From the NCBI GenBank assembly GCA_965113315.1, contig OZ220364.1: 64,000 nucleotides of DNA, one strand, 5' to 3'. This document shows, piece by piece, positions 1,226 to 17,772 of the stretch. The DNA is from Podarcis vaucheri. Lineage: Eukaryota. The notes under the pieces were generated by a model. The model saw only the letters and a list, made by a program, of their open reading frames with translations. It did no database searches and had not been told where the DNA came from. A program made the translations under genes and the position numbers. Each line of letters opens with the position of its first letter. Position 1 is the stretch's first letter.

Positions 1226-1271
1226 GCTGCTGTACAACTTGCGGTACTTAGGCCACGTCAATGTAGGAAAG
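1226..1271 (+). CDS. PTB-domain gene exon A (LLYNLRYLGHVNVGK)
   Basis: Acceptor ttttctcctcag, donor gtgaga; 46 nt, phase 2 to 0. Confidence 0.8.
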
Positions 1272-4200
1272 GTGAGACTGGGTCTTGGACAGAGAAGGGA
1301 GGATTGTTTAGCTTTCCTTGTTGTTGGTTTATGTCTTTTATTTTTGTTACACCTTTCCGATTCTTATTTTCAGTATGGAAGCAAAGAGGTGTTAGACCAA
1401 GGCATACCTATGGTTTTAGAGAAACGTTTGCCACGACAGGTACGTTTCCTGCTTTAACAGTCCAAAATGTGGAGACATTTTTCCAGAATGTGGAGACTGG
1501 CACACGAGTAGGGCATACAGTTGCTAGATGCATTCTTGTATATTTCTGCGTTTGCATATGTTTGGTTTTTCTCTCAAGTTTTGTTTGTTTTTTTAATTTT
1601 AAGCAGACTGGAGTTTGACCGCAATAACTCTTTGCCCATTCTTTCTTTGTGAGGAATTGCTAAATCACATTATAGGTTATGAGGGCAAAATTATTGATAG
1701 GTGGGAGAGTCAAACTTTCCTTTTTTTTATTCATTCTTCCCCTATCTTTCCTCAAGTAAGCCCAAGGCAGTGTACAATGTTCTGTTCTCTTCTCCACCCG
1801 CCAAACGTTATCTTCTCAATAACCCTTTGTGATCTGTTAAGACTAAGAGATGGTGTCTGGCCCAAATTCACCCACTGAAGTTCGTGACTGAGGTGAGATT
1901 TGAACCTGGATCTCTCTAGCCCTAGTCCAGCAAACTAAACAAATTTTAACCAGGTCTCTCAAAGGAAAGGACGCTTTTGCCTAGCAACCAAAAGCCCTCC
2001 AATTTGGGGTGTACGCAAAAAATTATTGAGCTTCTCCAGTCAAGAACACAACATGAGAGACAGGCCCAACTTTTGTACTCCTATAGCCTGTGAGGAAAAA
2101 ATAAAGAATCTACTTGAAACTGAAGGAGTATTTCTTTTCTTTCTCCTTTGATCAAATGCCTTGCGACAACTAAGCAGTAGTCATCGTTGTGGAAGGGAAA
2201 GAAACAAAATAGCAGCAAGCAGATAATTGCTTTTGACAAGTACCATTCACAAAAAAACTTGGTGAATCTGAGAAGCTATTAAATAGTGAAACTTTAACTG
2301 TATTCACTGAATTTGTGCAGTATAGTGATGACAATTCTGGTAGATCTTTTGGAGAAAGAATACTCTAAATATACACCCCCTTCTACAAGTCTAGGAATTA
2401 CAATTTCATATGAAAGCTGCCAAGAAATGCTTGACGAAAACAAACTATGATCCCTGTCTTACCGTTCGGCATCTGAACCCAGAGGTCATGATTTGTTTCC
2501 ATCAAACATTCCACAAACCTTGACCTGTTGCCAAAGTTTGGCCTTGGCTTACAGATTGTGGTTTGTTAGAGCGAAACAAACTACAAACAATGGTTCAGGA
2601 GGAGCAAGGCTGGTTCAGGGAATGCAAGAGTGAGGAGGAGCGGAGCAACCTAGCTTGGCACATTCACCACAAACAATTCATTTTGGTTTCCTCCCCAACT
2701 TGCTGCCCTGCAGACTACACACTCCCATCAGCCCCTGCCTGCACCGGCTAATTTACTACAAGGCTTTACTTCTTTGGGCATTCAGTTCTGCATGTTAACA
2801 GTTTCCGTAATGCCTTCTGCGCTCGGTTGCACATTTCTTTAGAAAGAGCTCTGAGAACCCTCCCTTAAATCATGTTCGTGTGGAAAGAGAGTTGACTATC
2901 TCAGATTTTAAAAATTCCTGAGGTACCTTTGTGCGATATGTAAATTCTTTAAATTCTTGGGGGGGTTAATGCACCCCACCACCAAAATGTGTCTAATGTG
3001 TGCCCTCTTCCTCTACCACACTGTCAGCTACCACCAGACGTAGTCCTGGTCTTGAGTATAGAACTGCTGTCCCAGATTGGATAGGAGACCTGAGTGAACA
3101 TTTCTTAACCAGTCACTTAATTGCAGCAGCCAGAAGTCGCCACTTCAAACAACACTGCAGCAAGTCACTAAACGTACATAAATTGATTTTATTCCAGCCA
3201 GAAGGCTACAAAATCAACAGAGAGACCCAAATGGTGGCCATATCTCTAGTTGCAGACCTTTATAAATCTACCAACAGGTCAGGTTTTGGAGAGACAGCAC
3301 ACATTCCTAAACATACTTTACAGCCTGGCTCCTTAAACAACCTCCTCCTTTTTTCCTGTCAGGTTGGCATGCAATTTGTGAGGAGAGAGAGACCTGAGTT
3401 CTAATGTACTACCTGCTAAAGAGATCCTCTCCCTCCCCTTTCTACCATTCTTTTTTTAGAAGAATGGTATAGAGCTTCTTATGTTTCTCCTACTCTCCCA
3501 AGACCATTGCATTTTTGCCTGTACAGTGGTACCTCAGGTTAAGTACTTAATTCGTTCGGGAGGTCCGTACTTAACCTGAAACTGTTCTTAACCTGAAGCA
3601 CCACTTTAGCTAATGGGGCCTCCTGCTGCTGCCGCGCTGCCAGAGCACGATTTCTGTTCTCATCCTGAAGCAAAGTTCTTAACCCAAGGTAATATTTCTG
3701 GGTTAGCGGAGTCTGTAATCTGAAGCGTATGTAACCCGAGGTACCACTGTATGCTTTTTCACCTTGATTGTATTTCAGTGACAGAGCACAGTGCTTTATA
3801 TTGGGGTGCTATAGAAATGCAGGCAAATAAAAATTCAAGGTTATAGTCCATTAAACACACACACAGGATAGATTTCTTTCTCTCCTGCATTATGTGGGAA
3901 GATGAAGCTGTCAAAAAAGAAAAGAGAGGGAGGGGCTTAATCAGACAATCACCCCAGCTTACAGTTACTCTTAAAACTGCTTGAAGCTGATGTTTGCAAT
4001 TTACTACTTGTGCATGAGTCCTTGCCATTTAAATATGGACATAAAGGTTTGAAGTTGTGTCACCATCTCAGTGAAAACATACAGGGCCGCAGCCTCTTCT
4101 CTCTGTACAATTTGGTTCTACGCTCATCCAGTCTGTCTGCCTGGCCAACAACTCACCTACTGTGGGTTTCTGAGACTGAGCTTTTCTAAAAACAACGCCT

Positions 4201-7200
4201 GATCCCACCAGCAAACAAGTGATGGAGGTGTTTTGAAACGACCACAATGCTGAGACCTTATTACAAGCCACCGTAGTATGCACTGCGGTAATGCAAGAGC
4301 AGCTGCTACTCAAGAGGAATTCAATGCTGCGCTCTTCCAATTGTTCCATCGGTGTTTCAGCTTGCCCTATGGAACCACATCCCATGGGGAGAGAAGAGGG
4401 GGGAAGGCCCCATTGCTTAGTGGGACTTATGCTAGCACACTAACTTAGCTGAATCCGGCCCGTTGTACCTGCAAGATGCCACCACCATCGGATGCGCCAT
4501 CGCACCATACCAGGAAAGGCTTACAAAACATGAATGGACCAAAGGGAGATTAATCAGCTGCATGGCCCTTTTCTTCTACCAGCTCAGAATGTCCCAAGCG
4601 TTTCCCTCTTAAAGATGAGGTGGAAACGCAGCTTTGGAAATAAATAAGGCCATTTGTTCTGCTCACCCTTTCACCCTATTGCCAGAATGAGCTGGCATAG
4701 CATGCGACTTGCGTTTCCCCAGTGCTGGAGAAAGTCAATTGCTGTTCCAGTGAAGGCACTCAAGGCCGCTACTGGTTTGTTTTCTGGGTAGCTCATATGT
4801 AGCAACCTACTCACATGTGCATCTTTATTCAACCCAGGTGAGTGCTTCAAAACAGGGACATAATTTAAAGCAGTGGGTTTAAATTATTCTTTCCTCCAAT
4901 AAGCTCAAAGCTTGTGTACATTGTTCTGCTTTCTCCCCTACCCCCAAACTTTACCCTCAAAATAACCGTGGGGTAGGTTAGACTGAGCTTAAATTACTCT
5001 TTTTTGAATACATTAATACATCAAACATATAGATTGGTAGAACTATTTTGTGGTTTTTTTAAAAAAACAAACATATACAGCTGCTGAAGTCAATGCTATG
5101 AACTACAATAGGGCAAATGTGAGAGCGTCAATTTACACCAACTATTTTTGGCTGACGTACATCAAAATGTTTACATTGGCAATTTTGCGAAAATTATGCA
5201 GTCTGTTAAGTGATCAGTTTGAGGCTATCACTGTGATTATTTCTACCCCAAATCACTCCAAAGTTGAAGGAAGCAAAAATGAGGAAAAGACTTGAAATCG
5301 CAGCAAAATGCTCAGGCCTTATCTGTTAATTTTCTGTTGCAGGCGTTTTGACAATTAACAGTGCATTTTACTTACCTATTATTGTTTCGAACATTTGGAA
5401 TATATTTTCGCAGGAGGTTTTATTTGATGTCAAAGAAACAGAAGTCGTTGTTCAAGAGAAAGCTGCTTCAAAGGTTAGAGTACTTTTCTTTACTGTTTGT
5501 GCTTGTCCTGACTATGTTTAAATATTTTATGTCAAAATTATTCATAGAATGCAGGCCACTGAATTTAGCTGCTTTCTGCTAAGTAGAACTTGCCTATAAT
5601 GTGTGTGACTTTACTGGAAGATAGGTTGCACATAGAGGAGCTATTTGTTTAAATTTACAACAAAGTGTCTATTTGATTGTGTGGATCATGGTCCATGCAC
5701 ACACATTTAGAAAACAAAGAGCATAAAATTGTAAATAATCAGTTCTAGGCCACTGCCTTATCAGATCACTCAATGTTGTTGCCAGGTTCTGTTTCGTTAC
5801 TCTTATATAGACATTTCCTGTGTGGGACGGCGTCTGGACAGCAACAATCTCTTCGCCTTCTGCAGTGTGTGAGTTAAAAATAACAACCACCCACATGCCT
5901 AGAGATACACTACACCAGGATTCTATTATCCCTGGCTGTGTAATTGCATGTGGCAGCAATGCATTTAGAGCAGGCTGAAGTTCGAGTTGATCTTTTCAAA
6001 GTTCAGTTTTCCCTGCCAACAGTTCTGCTGAAATCCCTTACTATACACTCTTGAGCCTATGTAAATCATACAGTGGTGCCCCGCAAGACAGAAAACTCGC
6101 AAGACGGAAAACTCACTAGATGAATGGGCTTGCTTCGTAAGACGACAATGTCTTGCGAGTTCCTGCTGGTTTTTTTCCTCCCCCCCTTTTTCTAAGCCGA
6201 TTATCAGCTGATCCGATCAGCATATAAGCCGCTAAAAGCCGCTAATAGCACTAATCAGTCAATGGGCTTGCTTCGCAAGACGAAAAAAACGCTAGACGAA
6301 GAGAATCACAGAACGGATTCTTTTCGTCTTGCGAGGCACCACTGTACTCTATTGTACGTCTGCCTCTCATTTTGATAAAATCATCCTATTTGGAATACCC
6401 CAAGGCACCTTGGGTTGTCTGGGGGGAAATTCACCCTGGCCTAGTTTAGCCATCGCTGGCCTTTCAGCTGGTGGGTTGAGACCTGCTACCCAGTCACTAC
6501 CTTAATCTTAGGCGCGTCCCAGCAGTAGTACAGTGGTACCTCGGGTTAAGTACTTAATTCGTTCTGGAGGTCCATTCTTAACCTGAAGCACTTTAGCTAA
6601 TGGGGCCTCCCGCTGCTGCCACGCCGCCGGAGCACGATTTCTGTTCTCATCCTGAAGCAAGTTCTTAACCCGAGGTATTATTTCTGGGTTAGCAGAGTCT
6701 GTAACCTGAAGCATATGTAACCTGAGATACCACTGTACTACAAATATGCCCGCCCATGCATTGTTTGAGGTAAAGGTTTGTGCCATCTCTGAAAAGGTTG
6801 AAGTATATATAGAGCATTGATCTTCCACTGGTAGATCAGGCTTTGCTTATGCATCTATTAGCATAATTTTGATGCTTTTGTAAAACTGAAGAAAAATAAA
6901 GGGGGAAAAACACTAGATTTGCTACTGGAGTCTGTAGCCTGACCTCAGGTGCATCACAACAGCAGCACTTTCACAATGAAATATGCCCCCAAGTTTGGAT
7001 AAAGAGATAGGCCCCAGGTCCTGTAAAGGTCAGAAGCAATGTGTTAGCAGTACCTCAGCTTGCCAGTGTGCTTAAAGGATTAGTGTTAAATTTAAGATGG
7101 GGCAGAATGAACAAAGATTCATTCTGCCACATGCATATCAAATTTATTGCCCATAGTGTTGTCATCAGTACCTCATTATGGGATTCCCTCCCTTTGCCAA

Positions 7201-8151
7201 TCTGATTAGCCCAGATCCTTACATGCTTTCAGAGTCAGTTGCATTTCTTTGCCCAATCTTTTGTGTGTTGTCACTTTGTTATTTTACCCTACTAGCTGTT
7301 GTGTTTTAAGGCTCTTCAAGATGTTCTTTTATTGTGCATTCATTTGTACTGATGTTGGGTCTCAAGCTGGCTATATAGGATCCTGCCTTCAATGCTGTGC
7401 ACAGGCCATAGCTTCCTTCTGAAATCCTGTGACTTCTCATCACAAATATTACAGGGCCTTTAAAGTTCTTTGCACAATAATGTAACATCCAGGAAGCATC
7501 ACTAATGAAGTGGAATTAATCCACTATTGTGTCAATCTTGTTTAATAATACATCTGCAAAATCCGCATAGGCAGATGTGTATTTTAGTGTAACCTGTTCT
7601 GATTGATTTGGCAATGCAGGCAAGAATAATTTTCAATATATTATACTGTATAGGGTTTCACCTGAGTCTTCGGAACAAAGCACCTTCGACTGTCTTGTAT
7701 TTGAATCAAACACTGAAGATGAAAGTGAGGAAATAATAAGAAGAATTGGTAAGGATATTTGTTCTTTGGTGTACAACTAAAAAGTAGCAAGGCCTCTATA
7801 GCCTGTTAATGAAGCATACTTAGTGTACTTGCAAGCTAGTAATTCCAAGACGTAGAAAGCTAATAAGATTAGGCTTCGCAGTAATTGTATATCTGCATTT
7901 CTAATTATGTTCAAGGACTTGGGCTTAGTATGAAATAAAGTAGGAAGTCTTCTGTTTGATCTATGAGGATTTCCAGGTCAGTATCCCAATCACCCAGTAT
8001 CTAGCATGCTAGTGGTTAGGAGACAAATTCTGTTCTTTCAAAACCATGGCTAGAGCAGCAAGTACTGGCAACTTCAGGAATATTATTTTAAGATTAATGA
8101 CCATTTGTTTCTTTAGCTGCTGGATTTAAACACACAGAATGGTTTGTCTGA
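1226..8151 (+). CDS. Uncharacterised PTB/PID-domain protein, spliced, 5' end incomplete; exons 1226-1271, 1374-1439, 5414-5473, 5786-5868, 7654-7748, 8117-8151
   Basis: Six exons with AG/GT boundaries and compatible phases translate to LLYNLRYLGHVNVGKYGSKEVLDQGIPMVLEKRLPRQEVLFDVKETEVVVQEKAASKVLFRYSYIDISCVGRRLDSNNLFAFCSVVSPESSEQSTFDCLVFESNTEDESEEIIRRIAAGFKHTEWFV*. This carries the PTB motifs YLG-x-V, IS-C, FAF, F-x-C-x-VF and a terminal helix I-x-x-x-F. Confidence 0.85.
1374..1439 (+). CDS. PTB-domain gene exon B (YGSKEVLDQGIPMVLEKRLPRQ)
   Basis: Acceptor ttcttattttcag, donor gtacgt; 66 nt, phase 0 to 0. Confidence 0.82.
1740..1940 (-). mobile_element. Old tRNA-derived SINE (MIR/Squam-like), approximate bounds
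   Basis: Reverse B-box-like gatttgaacc, followed by a core-like segment (aataaccctttgtga...ggcccaaattcaccca) resembling squamate MIR-like SINEs. Confidence 0.5.
3524..3749. mobile_element. Tc1/mariner (Tigger/pogo-like) MITE, family A
   Basis: Terminal inverted repeats (TIRs) CAGTGGTACCTC...GAGGTACCACTG with TA on both flanks. Near-identical copies at 6531, 14450 and 28144. Confidence 0.9.
5414..5473 (+). CDS. PTB-domain gene exon C (EVLFDVKETEVVVQEKAASK)
   Basis: Acceptor ttttcgcag, donor gttaga; 60 nt, phase 0 to 0. Confidence 0.82.
5786..5868 (+). CDS. PTB-domain gene exon D (VLFRYSYIDISCVGRRLDSNNLFAFCS)
   Basis: Acceptor gttgttgccag, donor gtgagt; 83 nt, phase 0 to 2. Confidence 0.85.
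6071..6344. mobile_element. Tc1/mariner MITE, family B
   Basis: TIRs CAGTGGTGCCCCGCAAGAC / GTCTTGCGAGGCACCACTG with TA flanks; homologous to 19629-20001. Confidence 0.88.
6531..6735. mobile_element. Tc1/mariner MITE, family A (internal deletion)
   Basis: CAGTGGTACCTCGG...GATACCACTG with TA flanks. Confidence 0.88.
7654..7748 (+). CDS. PTB-domain gene exon E (VSPESSEQSTFDCLVFESNTEDESEEIIRRI)
   Basis: Acceptor tactgtatag, donor gtaagg; 95 nt, phase 2 to 1. Confidence 0.85.
8117..8151 (+). CDS. PTB-domain gene terminal coding exon (AAGFKHTEWFV*)
   Basis: Acceptor ttgtttctttag; phase-1 start; TGA at 8149-8151. Confidence 0.82.
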
Positions 8152-8397
8152 TTGAGATGCATGATGCTCTGCTTCTGGGTTTCTGCCAATGACCTACTTT
8201 TGGAGCTGAACTGGCATGCAAAAGGGCCTAGTTTCAGTCAGTGATACGCTGCCAGGCTTGCTCTTGGATTAAGGCGGCACTATGAAAGGATTAAAACTCT
8301 ACACTGGAAATAGTATTTTGGCTACCTCCTACAACAGAAGACTGAGTTTTTACAAGCGTTTTCTTTTCATGTTTATACGGACATTTTCAGAATTTGG

Positions 8398-8403
8398 AAT
8401 AAA
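8398..8403 (+). terminator. Candidate polyadenylation signal of the PTB-domain gene
   Basis: First AATAAA, about 250 nt after the stop; a second lies at 8901-8906. Confidence 0.45.
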
Positions 8404-9124
8404 ATCAAGCTGAAGCCATGGATTTGCATACTATTTGTATTAACCAAAGTTTCTACATTTAAAAATGAGAGACAGATTCAATGTAATGAGTCAAGCATAA
8501 CTTACTATGACAGTTCAGTTTTTCAGTGTGTAACGTTACTAGTTTTGTGCTTACATTGTTTAAAGAAATCAGAAATAAGAATCTGAAGAACACTGTATAT
8601 ACACTTTTCGGTACACCCCCTTTACTCCTTTAATTTTTGTTATTTGCTGCCAGGGGCTGTCGACTAGAAGCCTAGGTGAAGAATTAACTCCATTCCCCAA
8701 AAAATAACAGCCTGATTGTCTGCTTTGGTTATAGAAGTGGAAGCTGCATTTCAAAATATAAATGGCGATTTCACTCAAACTGCTTCAAAACAAACCCAAA
8801 AGTGTAAGAGAAAAAGGGTACATGAAGAAACCAACCAAGGCAGCAAGGATAGGGTATTAACACTCAAGACCTAAATTATACCACTTGAGGACTTTTGATC
8901 AATAAAAGTAGGCCTAAAAACACCAAGTCTGACAGTGTTCTGATATTTAATAAGTGGGGAAAACTATTTTCCAAATTAGCAAGCGTTTAATCACTCTAGG
9001 TTACATAAGTACAGCAAGCTTCTGCCGTAATTGGAGTTGCATACCAAGCAAGGAACAGGCTTAACTTGATTTGAGCAGGGATAGTATAAGACAAAATAGT
9101 AATACTACTTTCCCCACAACAATG

Positions 9125-9290
9125 NNNNNNNNNNNNNNNNNNNNNNNNNNNNNNNNNNNNNNNNNNNNNNNNNNNNNNNNNNNNNNNNNNNNNNNNNNNN
9201 NNNNNNNNNNNNNNNNNNNNNNNNNNNNNNNNNNNNNNNNNNNNNNNNNNNNNNNNNNNNNNNNNNNNNNNNNNNNNNNNNNNNNNNNNN
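9125..9290. other. Assembly gap (N run)
   Basis: 166 consecutive N, in or just beyond the H3-3B 3' UTR. Confidence 0.99.
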
Positions 9291-9373
9291 GAAAGTCCAC
9301 ATTCTATCACAGTGATGTATGGTCAGACTTAACAGCCCCAATTGTTAAACACTTGGATCAAGTTATAACCAGT

Positions 9374-9379
9374 TTTATT
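9374..9379 (-). terminator. Candidate proximal polyadenylation signal of H3-3B
   Basis: TTTATT on + equals AATAAA on -, about 335 nt past the H3.3 stop codon. Confidence 0.5.
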
Positions 9380-9711
9380 GCAAAAAGACCCTGTACACAT
9401 TTATATCAATTCTAGTACCTTACAATTTTAGCTACCCAACAAGTCATTAACATACAGAAACATGCATGAAAAGCAAGAAAGATCACCCATCCCTTCTGCA
9501 TATTAGCAACTTGTCACTGTTGAGCAACAAAGCTCACATCACTGAGTTTTTATGTGAACAGTCACTTTTAGCATTCATCCTGAGTGAAAGATGGAATGAC
9601 TTAAGTACAAATGTAACATATTATAAACAATTTCATACAAAAAAAAGTCACAAATTGAAACCAAAGTATTTTACAGAATTTACTACAAAACACCATAAAA
9701 ACTGCCTCCTC

Positions 9712-10520
<809 letters not shown>

Positions 10521-14675: not shown

Positions 14676-15279
14676 TGCTCAGTACTGTATATGATTTGAC
14701 CCATGCCAACTACACAACTGAAAGAGGAATTGTAAAGCACCTTGTCTTCTGAAATGTTCTATGTAAATAAATTTATGTGCAATAAAGTCATTGCAATAAC
14801 AATGCCTATACATATCTAGTTATTACTGTAAAGGTTTAACCACTTTATAGGTAAGTGGCATAGTTTATGACAAACTATTATATTTACTCAGACACCTCAC
14901 AACAGCAGACAATAGCTCATCCTGTTCTAATGATAGCAAAACATTCTATGAGAAGGAGTTCGTCTAATCAACTGTTTTAAAGCCCCGATTTTCTTTCACT
15001 ATAGAAGCTGTCATTGTCAACCAGAATTGCCATACAGTACTGATTTGCCATCTTAAAATTACATAAACATCCTACAGTTTTTTACCAGAAGAACTAGTGC
15101 ACAGACTCCTACATCTGCATTCCTACATCTGCGCTTGCTGGCATTTGCTTCCAAGTGAACATCGTTTGGATCGGGCTGTATCAGTTTTACGTGCGGCTAA
15201 ATTGTTCAAAACGCTTCGAGGCTTGGATAGCGCTGCTTCTGCTTAGATCCGCTTGATGGCAATCCATGGAGGAACTCAT

Positions 15280-16030
15280 CCGAACTACAACTCCTATGAA
15301 ACCCCGCGCTGTTGCACAATCCGGGGCAGCGAGCGCAGGGCACCCCTGGAAGTTGTAGTTTCATTGGCCGGAAGCCCAGTAGAAGAAAAGGGGGACTTTC
15401 CGCCATCACCGGGACTACAAGCCCCAGCATGCTTTGGGTAACCCGGGGCGGTAATGGCGGCGGCAGCGCCTGCGCATTGCGGTCTCCGTGCGGACCGCGC
15501 AGAGTGAATAATAAAGCTCTCCTCCTCGGTGGTAGCGGGCGGCGGCGGAGGGAGTGGAAGGCAGGAGCATGTCGAAGGGCCCGGTAGCGACCGGGCCTCC
15601 CGCGACCGGGCCGGTGGCGCCCGCCAGCGCGCTCCAGGCGCAGCCCGAGAAGCCGCAGCACTACACGTACGTAGCGAGAACACCCGCAGCCGCCACTTAC
15701 TGCTGCTGCGACCGCCGCCGCCGCACCCCTCCGCCCGGCACCCGCCCGCGCGCCACACACGCCTGACGTCAGCGGGCAGCGTGCGGCTCGCGCGCACGGA
15801 AGCCAACCGCCCGCCCGGAACCGGCTGGAACCGGTCGTGGCCGGCCTGGGCCGGTGGAATTTCGCCTGAGTGGGAGGGGGCGGGGCGGGAGCTGACACCC
15901 CCCCCGCCGCCGCGCGCTTTTCCGTTCCCGCGCGCGAGTGCGCGCGCAAGAACAACCCCACATACATAATACACACACCCCACAAGCTGAGGCGCGCGAT
16001 ACCCATGATGCGTTGCGGCTCGCGCACCCC
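15280..16030 (+). promoter_or_regulatory. UNK CpG-island promoter
   Basis: Very GC/CpG-rich. ACTACAA-type ZNF143/THAP11 motifs at 15284, 15345-15359 (-) and 15414; CCGGAAG (ETS) at 15368; GGGACTTTCC at 15392; ATGGCGGC (YY1-like) at 15454; GCGCCTGCGCA (NRF1-like) at 15466. Confidence 0.8.
15569..15666 (+). CDS. UNK: UNK coding exon 1
   Basis: ATG at 15569; MSKGPVATGPP...PEKPQHY; donor gtacgt; phase 2. Confidence 0.93.
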
Positions 16031-17772
16031 ATGGCTCCCTTTACGTTGACTTGAGGGGGGTAGTGGGTACCTCTTTTAATCTTCCTCGCCCCCCCCCCCT
16101 TTCCCCAAATCATGTGTTTTGTACTTGGTAGTGTCTCTCTCGGCTCTGCCTTCTTCCGCTTAGTAAAACGGCAATGCGTCTTTCCATGCCGCCAAGTAGG
16201 ACGGTTGTGAACTCAAATATTGGAAAAACAAGTGGTTTAGTTTACTATGTTTCTATATAATCTTCGCTTTCTTTCTTTCTCAAGTACTAACCTCGTGTTA
16301 ACGGCCGTGGGCTTGTGGTAAACTCAAATAAGGGCATCCTTTATCTTATTTCGAACTGCCTTTTCTAGAGTAAAGGGACCATCCCATAAAAATCTAAGCT
16401 GCTCTTTGCCAGAGCTTTGACTTTCTTTGCTGTTCTTCCTTGGCACTGGGTTAGTTTGTCTTTCTCTCAGGAGATGCCCCGTTAAAATTTCAAGAATAAG
16501 GGAAGCTGTGGTGTGTGTTCTGTGAAGTAAAGGATGCCAAGCCCAGGAGAAACGTTATGTAGAGTAAATTGCTGTAATTCTAGGGGGGAAATGGTAAGAA
16601 AAGAGAGAGCAGAAAATAGTGTTTTTTCTCAGTCGCTGTAGTACAAAATGCTTTGGTAGAAAAATGTCAAAGGGATACTGAGTTCTGAAATAAACGGCCT
16701 GTTAGTGTTCTGTGGCAATTGTGTGAGGAAAGTATTGTTTTCACTCCATTCAGAAATCCTGGTAAATTCTCTTGTGACCTAATTCTGTGAATAACTGGCT
16801 AAGCAAATGCAGGTATTTTGGACCAGACAGTGAATTATGTGCCACTGGTGACATCACCAACCTCTGTAGCATTGCACTGCAGGTGCAAATCCACAAAGGA
16901 TGCTAGTACCTTGGCATAGTGTTGTGGGACAGTGGTACTACGCTAGAAACAGCCTTCATTTCTGTATGTGTCTTGTGGTATAATGCAAAGCTAATATATG
17001 GCATGGAATTGGCCAGAAATGAAGTACAGTCAGGTTAGAACTAAGAAAGTGCAACCCTTCATGTATCTTAGGCTGCAATCCTATACAGTGGTACCTCGGT
17101 TTAAGAACAGTCCTGTTTAAGAACGATTTGGTTTACAAACTCCGCAAAGCCGGAAGTAGTGTCCCAGTTTGCGAACTTTACCTTGGTCTAAGAACAGAAT
17201 CCAAATGGTGGAAGGGCACCAGTGGCGGGAGGCCTTATTAGGTAAAGCGTGCCTCGGTTTAAGAACGGTTTCGGTTTAAGAACGGAATTCCGGAACGGAT
17301 TAAGTTCGTAAACTGAGGTACCACTGTACCTACATTCCTTGGACTAAACCCATTGAACTCAGTAGGGCATACTTCTGATTGGACATGTGAATTGTCTCAA
17401 GGATATGGAGAAGTGGAATAAAAATGTTGTAAATCAATAAAATGCTTCAGAGCTAGTAATACCGCTACAAGCAGTCACTGTGTTTTAACTGATAACAAAT
17501 GTTAGTGCACAGTTGTCTTACTTGTAACACAGAAGATCCTGCTGCTGTAGCTTGCTCCAGTATACCTCCTCCATGCAAATGCTCATTTATTTAATAAGTT
17601 TTGAAATTAATGGCTTCCCAGCCAGAATGTGGTACACTGCTTCAGGAGGCAAAGTTGAACAATAAAATAAATTGGATACATAACTGTTGTGCAAAATTGC
17701 TTGGGTATTTGTTCTGCTGCTCAATTGGGACTCAACCAATTTTTATATCAGGCCTAGTTTACAAGTATGACT

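Follow-up and report, generated by a model that had tools for sequence, protein, structure and literature searches.

The 3′ part of a probable RUN-PDZ-PTB gene adjoining H3-3B in the lizard Podarcis vaucheri

Dab-like PTB domains bind NPxY or NPxF tails and typically carry a helix between strands beta1 and beta2, and PDZ domains bind C-termini; in Mint, the PDZ tandem is closed by the C-terminus of Mint itself. RUN domains chiefly bind GTPases of the Rab and Rap families (PMC7431699). RUN, PDZ, and PTB are classic domains of trafficking and signalling, and their combination in one protein is without a characterised representative and apparently has none in human, so that the proteins carrying it have stayed "uncharacterized LOC…" in hundreds of annotations. 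A stretch of 64,000 nucleotides (nt) from P. vaucheri (assembly GCA_965113315.1, contig OZ220364.1), referred to below as the window, was analysed for such a gene. Positions 1226-8419 of the + strand very probably belong to the lacertid ortholog of an annotated, unstudied RUN-PDZ-PTB gene with the zebrafish-derived name si:ch211-250n8.1, of which they comprise the final six coding exons and the 3′ untranslated region (UTR); the gene product would serve as a scaffold (Table 1). An earlier note, made from the sequence alone, had described these exons as a hidden gene with a 127-amino-acid (aa) product. That such a gene exists was already apparent from public annotation, which contains predicted models for hundreds of species; in many squamates, birds, amphibians, and fishes, NCBI lists the product as an "uncharacterized protein LOC...". 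New here are the correct reading of the locus, the description at the level of domains, and the hypothesis of a contact between the C-terminal tail and a PDZ domain.

Table 1. Coordinates of the exons, of the neighbouring gene, and of the domains located in the closest ortholog
Feature	Position	Strand	Description
Exon E1	1226-1271	+	46 nt; LLYNLRYLGHVNVGK; PTB strand beta1; ortholog residues 301-315
Exon E2	1374-1439	+	66 nt, 22 codons; YGSKEVLDQGIPMVLEKRLPRQ; beta1-beta2 helix; ortholog residues 316-337
Exon E3	5414-5473	+	60 nt, 20 codons; EVLFDVKETEVVVQEKAASK; PTB strands beta2-beta3; ortholog residues 338-357
Exon E4	5786-5868	+	83 nt, phase 2 out; VLFRYSYIDISCVGRRLDSNNLFAFCS+GT; ortholog residues 358-385
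Exon E5	7654-7748	+	95 nt, phase 2 in and phase 1 out; VSPESSEQSTFDCLVFESNTEDESEEIIRRI; ortholog residues 385-417
Exon E6, coding part	8117-8151	+	35 nt; (A)AGFKHTEWFV + TGA; invariant C-terminal tail
3′ UTR	8152..8419	+	~270 nt; AATAAA at 8398-8403; spliced contigs end at 8409-8419
H3-3B	8426..10520	-	Histone H3 peptides; high-depth contigs from 8426-8450 rightward
RUN domain	Residues 34-160 (P0042)		Pfam 41.9-60.5 bits in eight full-length orthologs; cutoff 22
PDZ domain	Residues 184-245 (P0042)		Pfam 21.5-32.1 bits in eight full-length orthologs; cutoff 23.2
PID/PTB domain	Residues 333-420 (P0042)		Pfam 16-29.4 bits in eight full-length orthologs; cutoff 20.9

Exons, orthologs, and transcription

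Each of the six exons was stop-free in its own frame, and all six acceptors consisted of an AG behind a pyrimidine-rich tract. The donors of E1-E5 all began with GT (gtgagact, gtacgttt, gttagagt, gtgagtta, and gtaaggat, respectively). The introns followed the phases 0, 0, 0, 2, and 1, and the chain of 125 whole codons and two split codons (GT/G for Val and G/CT for Ala) encoded 127 residues up to a TGA stop codon at 8149-8151 in E6. This part of the earlier description, namely the exons, their splice sites and phases, and the stop, was upheld by the sequence itself, by collinear orthologs, and by three spliced joints.

An exhaustive phmmer search with the E5 peptide (31 aa) led to protein fragments from ostrich (KFV76545.1) and cobra (KAG8129033.1), both of which carry E2-E6 in order as a single chain. 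With these two fragments as queries, a family was retrieved whose members come from birds, turtles, tuatara, snakes, and teleosts, and in the longer models of this family a PDZ and a RUN domain precede the PTB part. The Podarcis isoform P0037 stops with "...CLQGGR", precisely at the start of E1, and a 300-aa Podarcis isoform with this ending, used as a query, retrieved full-length proteins of ~427 aa. These were found in lacertids and other squamates, turtles, crocodilians, birds, caecilians, frogs, and salamanders, as well as in lungfish, coelacanth, sharks, rays, chimaera, sturgeon, and gar. The six peptides of the window aligned gap-free and end to end with residues 301-315, 316-337, 338-357, 358-384, 386-416, and 418-427 of the Podarcis proteins (LOC114590625/LOC128407513), from Podarcis raffonei and P. 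muralis, with 123 of 125 residues identical to both and 119 of 125 identical to the Zootoca protein; the window is accordingly of lacertid origin. The signal of the exons is well above chance. The peptides occupy residues 301-427, and the 127-aa product is therefore only the last third of a RUN-PDZ-PTB protein of 427 aa. By the same comparison, the exons for RUN and PDZ must lie upstream of the window.

The PTB-only forms predicted by NCBI, such as isoform X4 of Calypte anna (136 aa) and "si:ch211-250n8.1" of Limanda (141 aa), would be compatible with a stand-alone adaptor of ~127-140 residues that has its own promoter just upstream of E1. However, E1 is not the first exon of the gene. Its first base, a G behind a good acceptor, completes as third base an Arg codon whose start lies upstream, and the frame is therefore open at the 5′ end. 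Positions 1-1225 contained neither a coding-looking exon nor an in-frame ATG, which, given the phase 1 start of E1, leaves the window without a visible start for a stand-alone product. Furthermore, the lacertid orthologs continue from "...CLQGGR" straight into E1 within 427 aa, and the short forms of birds and fishes are isoforms obtained by computation rather than shown products. A separate adaptor of this type is improbable at this locus. Another short form, the Chelonia model P0019, joins the end of RUN directly to E3, skipping E1, E2, and PDZ; it was rejected as a true isoform and looks like a shortcut of gene prediction.

RNA-type contigs of four runs (three organisms, four studies) were aligned to positions 2600-8599. 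The joints E3-E4 (5473/5786) and E4-E5 (5868/7654) were exact in four runs and the joint E5-E6 (7748/8117) in three; all three were GT..AG, with a depth several-fold over the thin intron coverage. The E1-E2 and E2-E3 junctions are predicted from collinearity with the ortholog proteins. Transcription and splicing of the gene follow the model. These data also bear on the possibility that the exons are a decaying or non-functional remnant in this lizard, for which nothing specific speaks beyond the position of the 5′ part upstream of the window. The six open exons, the intact splice sites, the 98% identity to two Podarcis proteins, and the splicing in RNA-type contigs of several organisms at a depth above the intron background all argue against a remnant, which for the 3′ part of the gene is already contradicted and for the whole is scarcely credible.

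Reading through the E5 donor (7749-7782) produced an ending ...RRIGKDICSLVYN followed by a stop. Four database proteins from other species (P0001, P0021, P0025, and P0027) end in this same manner, with ...RIGK...; these endings look like unspliced read-through calls without the invariant tail rather than real isoforms. Introns 2 and 4 each harbored a copy of a repeat of ~230 nt that resembles a short interspersed element (3521-3751 and 6528-6737); the two copies were 91-94% alike and in the same orientation. Contigs of this repeat reached a depth of 10^4-10^5 in all four runs, and it therefore belongs to a very abundant transcribed family. Another high-copy repeat was located at ~6060-6360.

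Domain architecture and fold

The RUN domain (PF02759) was recognised in the orthologs by its profile and its helical fold, and the PDZ domain (PF00595) by its profile and its carboxylate-binding loop, judged against the type R/K-x-x-x-G-L-G-F; the exons encoding both are outside the window. The PDZ profile scored under its cutoff in P0042 (21.5 bits) and P0140 (22.8 bits) and reached 25.1-32.1 bits in the other six orthologs. The nearest sequences in the PDB were PLEKHM1, FYCO1, RUFY3, and RPIPx for RUN, and INADL and PICK1 for PDZ. The PID profile (PF00640) exceeded its cutoff in P0051 (29.4 bits), P0058 (26.3 bits), and P0120 (21.7 bits); other orthologs gave 16-19 bits, and one bird was without a PID match. 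A sequence search of the PDB with a PTB-only ortholog returned no match, and the PTB domain was recognised by fold search only. The peptides of single exons (20-31 aa) also matched nothing in Pfam or among the PDB sequences; these peptides are too short, and the null result is therefore no evidence against the domain.

The AlphaFold model of a PTB-only bird isoform (predicted local distance difference test, pLDDT, 81.9; predicted template modelling score, pTM, 0.77) was composed of strand beta1, a helix, six further strands, and a C-terminal helix. This predicted topology corresponds to the PH-like seven-strand beta-sandwich of PTB domains, with a helix between beta1 and beta2 and a capping C-terminal helix. 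All 50 matches listed by Foldseek for this model were PTB domains (template modelling, TM, score 0.64-0.78), including those of Mint1, AIDA-1, APPL1, X11, ARH, Fe65, GULP1, CCM2, Numb, Dab, and EPS8, and VIA-align gave Z scores of 12.8-17.5 over 113-127 residues. For Mint1, AIDA-1, APPL1, ARH, Fe65, Numb, and Dab, the TM scores were 0.7-0.8 and the Z scores 14-17.5. In the full-length lacertid model (pLDDT 74.5), the C-terminal part matched the same PTB structures, and the N-terminal part resembled the RUN structures of FYCO1, SKIP, RPIPx, PLEKHM1, NESCA, and RUSC2 (TMt 0.61-0.76). The RUN matches included the complexes SKIP-Arl8b, PLEKHM1-Arl8b, and RUSC2-Rab35, with the RUN-Arl8b complexes 8jc5 and 8jca among the best. 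The PTB domain, of the phosphotyrosine-independent (Dab-like) class, extends over about residues 300-418 of the 427-aa protein. According to the ortholog models, from which the secondary structure of the exons was read, E4 supplies the peptide-pairing strand with a conserved I-S-x-V-G signature and then the next strand, and E5 supplies the final strand of the PTB domain and its C-terminal capping helix. The Dab/Numb-type PTB fold read from the motifs in the earlier note is thus supported by Foldseek and VIA-align on ortholog models. Of the check suggested there, the fold part succeeded and the PF00640 part gave scores on both sides of the cutoff; the assignment of the fold is right, and on profiles alone it would be borderline.

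Automatic names assign a few orthologs to known families, namely "RUFY4" in Varanus and Atractosteus and "tensin-like C1 domain-containing phosphatase" in Pelobates. A paralog of Mint/X11 or JIP may also be considered, as Mint/X11 likewise pairs PTB with PDZ and its PTB domain is among the best fold matches. However, no FYVE, SH3, SH2, phosphatase, or second PDZ domain was found by Pfam in the eight full-length orthologs, the order RUN-PDZ-PTB fits none of RUFY4, the tensin-like proteins, Mint/X11, or JIP, and the identity of the PTB sequences is only 10-20%. RUFY4 needs a FYVE domain at the C-terminus, behind RUN and a coiled coil, whereas FYVE matched in 0 of 8 orthologs and their C-terminus is a PTB domain. 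Mint/X11 (APBA) needs a PTB followed by two PDZ domains, whereas here a single PDZ precedes the PTB and RUN is N-terminal. JIP1/2 (MAPK8IP1/2) needs an SH3 domain directly before its C-terminal PTB, and no SH3 match in these orthologs and no JIP chain among the listed fold matches was obtained. The names RUFY4 and tensin-like phosphatase are ruled out by domain content, and membership in any of these named families is very unlikely. Nearly all orthologs are labelled "uncharacterized protein LOC…" or with the zebrafish clone name, which agrees with the earlier statement that no named human counterpart is recognisable.

Conservation, proposed role, and distribution

In 47 full-length proteins, ranging from sharks to lizards, column identity averaged 69%. 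The carboxylate-binding loop of the PDZ domain (R183-E-L185-G186-M187-V188) was conserved at 94-100%. In the peptide-pairing strand of the PTB domain, I367, S368, and V370 were nearly invariant and G371 was invariant; together with E408, E411, R415, I416, and A417 of the helix, these residues, each at least 90% conserved, would form the putative surface for NPxY- or NPxF-type peptides along strand beta5 and the C-terminal helix. The most conserved segment of the whole protein (0.97) was formed by its last nine residues, GFKHTEWFV-COOH, encoded by E6. An invariant, disordered C-terminus that ends in hydrophobic-x-hydrophobic resembles a class II PDZ ligand, and the tail may accordingly be regarded as a candidate PDZ ligand. 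The ligand-like tail and the intact binding loop of the protein's own PDZ domain suggest either a contact of the protein with itself or recruitment by another PDZ protein. A complex prediction for the PDZ domain (residues 172-262) and the PTB-tail part (residues 296-427) of P0042 scored 0.32, where the mark was 0.34 and the controls scored 0.11, 0.02, and 0.00, and is not counted for or against binding.

The binding partners of the protein, and with them its cellular role, are all inferred. Most economically, the protein can be read as a cytosolic scaffold of membrane traffic that would link receptor tails to a membrane marked by a GTPase. On an endomembrane, a GTP-bound small GTPase of the Arl8, Rab, or Rap type would be the docking site of the RUN domain. 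NPxY- or NPxF-type motifs on receptor tails, and possibly acidic lipids, would be the ligands of the PTB domain, and a C-terminal peptide would be that of the PDZ domain. For this last ligand, the ...TEWFV-COOH tail of the protein itself would be a candidate, within one molecule or between two; the tail could also be bound by another PDZ protein.

Several points weigh against the assignment of the locus to a RUN-PDZ-PTB scaffold gene. The window contains the PTB part only, and RUN and PDZ are predicted here from orthologs with 98% identity in the part that can be compared. In the closest of these, P0042, the PID profile reached 20.0 bits, just under its cutoff. For some birds and fishes, short isoforms with the PTB domain alone are predicted, and this domain may therefore also occur as a separate product. 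The full-length model leaves the tail unplaced, with a pLDDT below 50 for residues 421-427. Finally, no ligand, GTPase, or localisation is on record for any member of the family, and literature searches with the clone name, the LOC numbers, and the domain combination returned no paper on the gene.

The RUN-PDZ-PTB family ranged from cartilaginous fishes to birds, and no mammal appeared among the best 120 of 293 matches, although sharks (59-61% identity) did. As judged from this match list, and from the naming of shark and coelacanth orthologs by NCBI after the zebrafish clone instead of a human gene, the family seems to be absent from mammals, which is in line with the non-mammalian vertebrate range proposed in the earlier note. 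The 69% identity from sharks to lizards and the invariant tail argue for an important function in most vertebrates, which would have been lost or reassigned in mammals. The architecture may predate the vertebrates. A more far-reaching proposal, offered tentatively and rather unlikely, is that of an old animal RUN-PDZ-PTB family (cartilaginous fishes to birds, possibly flatworms) that was lost in mammals, in which the tail and the PDZ domain would form a switch and which would couple an Arl8/Rab-type GTPase to NPxY receptors in a step that mammals would run with other adaptors. In the protein atlas, a cluster of 59 members, commonest in Platyhelminthes, contained RUN in 98%, PID in 29%, and PDZ in 12% of its members (score 0.96).

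Genomic surroundings and comparison with known systems

The + strand gene is followed by H3-3B on the opposite strand. The coding exons of H3-3B were located at ~10511-10386, 10106-9954, and ~9850-9700 (the third), its 3′ UTR is ~1.3 kb long and ends at ~8426-8450, and its 5′ non-coding exon and promoter are further to the right. The high-depth contigs that start at this 3′ end must be H3-3B mRNA. From the contig ends of the two genes (Table 1), the transcripts are separated by a gap of 10-40 nt; the tail-to-tail arrangement of this pair had been stated in the earlier note. In run X2, a contig of 2133 nt with a depth of 1082 reached left to 7869; it represents a long form of the H3-3B 3′ UTR that is antisense to E6 and part of intron 5. 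The sole run of N in the window (9125-9290) is inside the H3-3B 3′ UTR. Open reading frames of UNK were present further right on the + strand, at 34-58 kb, and a GC-rich region resembling a CpG island (15200-16100; GC 0.51) between H3-3B and the first recognisable UNK reading frames is probably the promoter and first-exon region of UNK.

Among the known systems, Mint/X11 (APBA1-3) shares with the present protein a Dab-like PTB and a PDZ domain, and the Mint1/X11 PTB structures (4dbb, 1aqc, and 1x11) were among the top fold matches (TM 0.70-0.72, Z 14.8-15.5). According to the title of 4dbb, the Mint PTB domain is autoinhibited by its own linker or tail; with the closure of the PDZ tandem by the Mint C-terminus, this is the model for the contact between tail and PDZ proposed here. 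In contrast, Mint has the order PTB-PDZ-PDZ, an N-terminus that binds Munc18 and CASK, and no RUN domain, whereas the order here is RUN-PDZ-PTB, with a PTB identity of ~16-18%.

The RUN effectors (PLEKHM1, PLEKHM2/SKIP, FYCO1, RUFY1-4, RPIPx, RUSC2, and NESCA) have the RUN domain in common with the N-terminus of the orthologs (Pfam up to 60.5 bits) and provide its best matches in both sequence and fold; several of them have been solved with Arl8b or Rab35. They differ in that they pair RUN with PH, FYVE, SH3, coiled-coil, or C1 regions, and none pairs it with PDZ and PTB; the identity of the RUN domains is 19-25%.

The simple Dab-like PTB adaptors (ARH/LDLRAP1, Numb, Dab1/2, GULP1, APPL1, AIDA-1/ANKS1B, PTB2 of Fe65, and ICAP1) have the same fold and topology (Z 13-17.5; root-mean-square deviation 1.8-2.9 over 115-126 residues), and the I-S-x-V-G motif found here resembles the I-S-F/Y-C signature of the Dab-like PTB family. 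On the other hand, their identity to the present domain is 10-21%, and here the PTB is the last domain, at the very C-terminal end, with an invariant tail of nine residues behind it.

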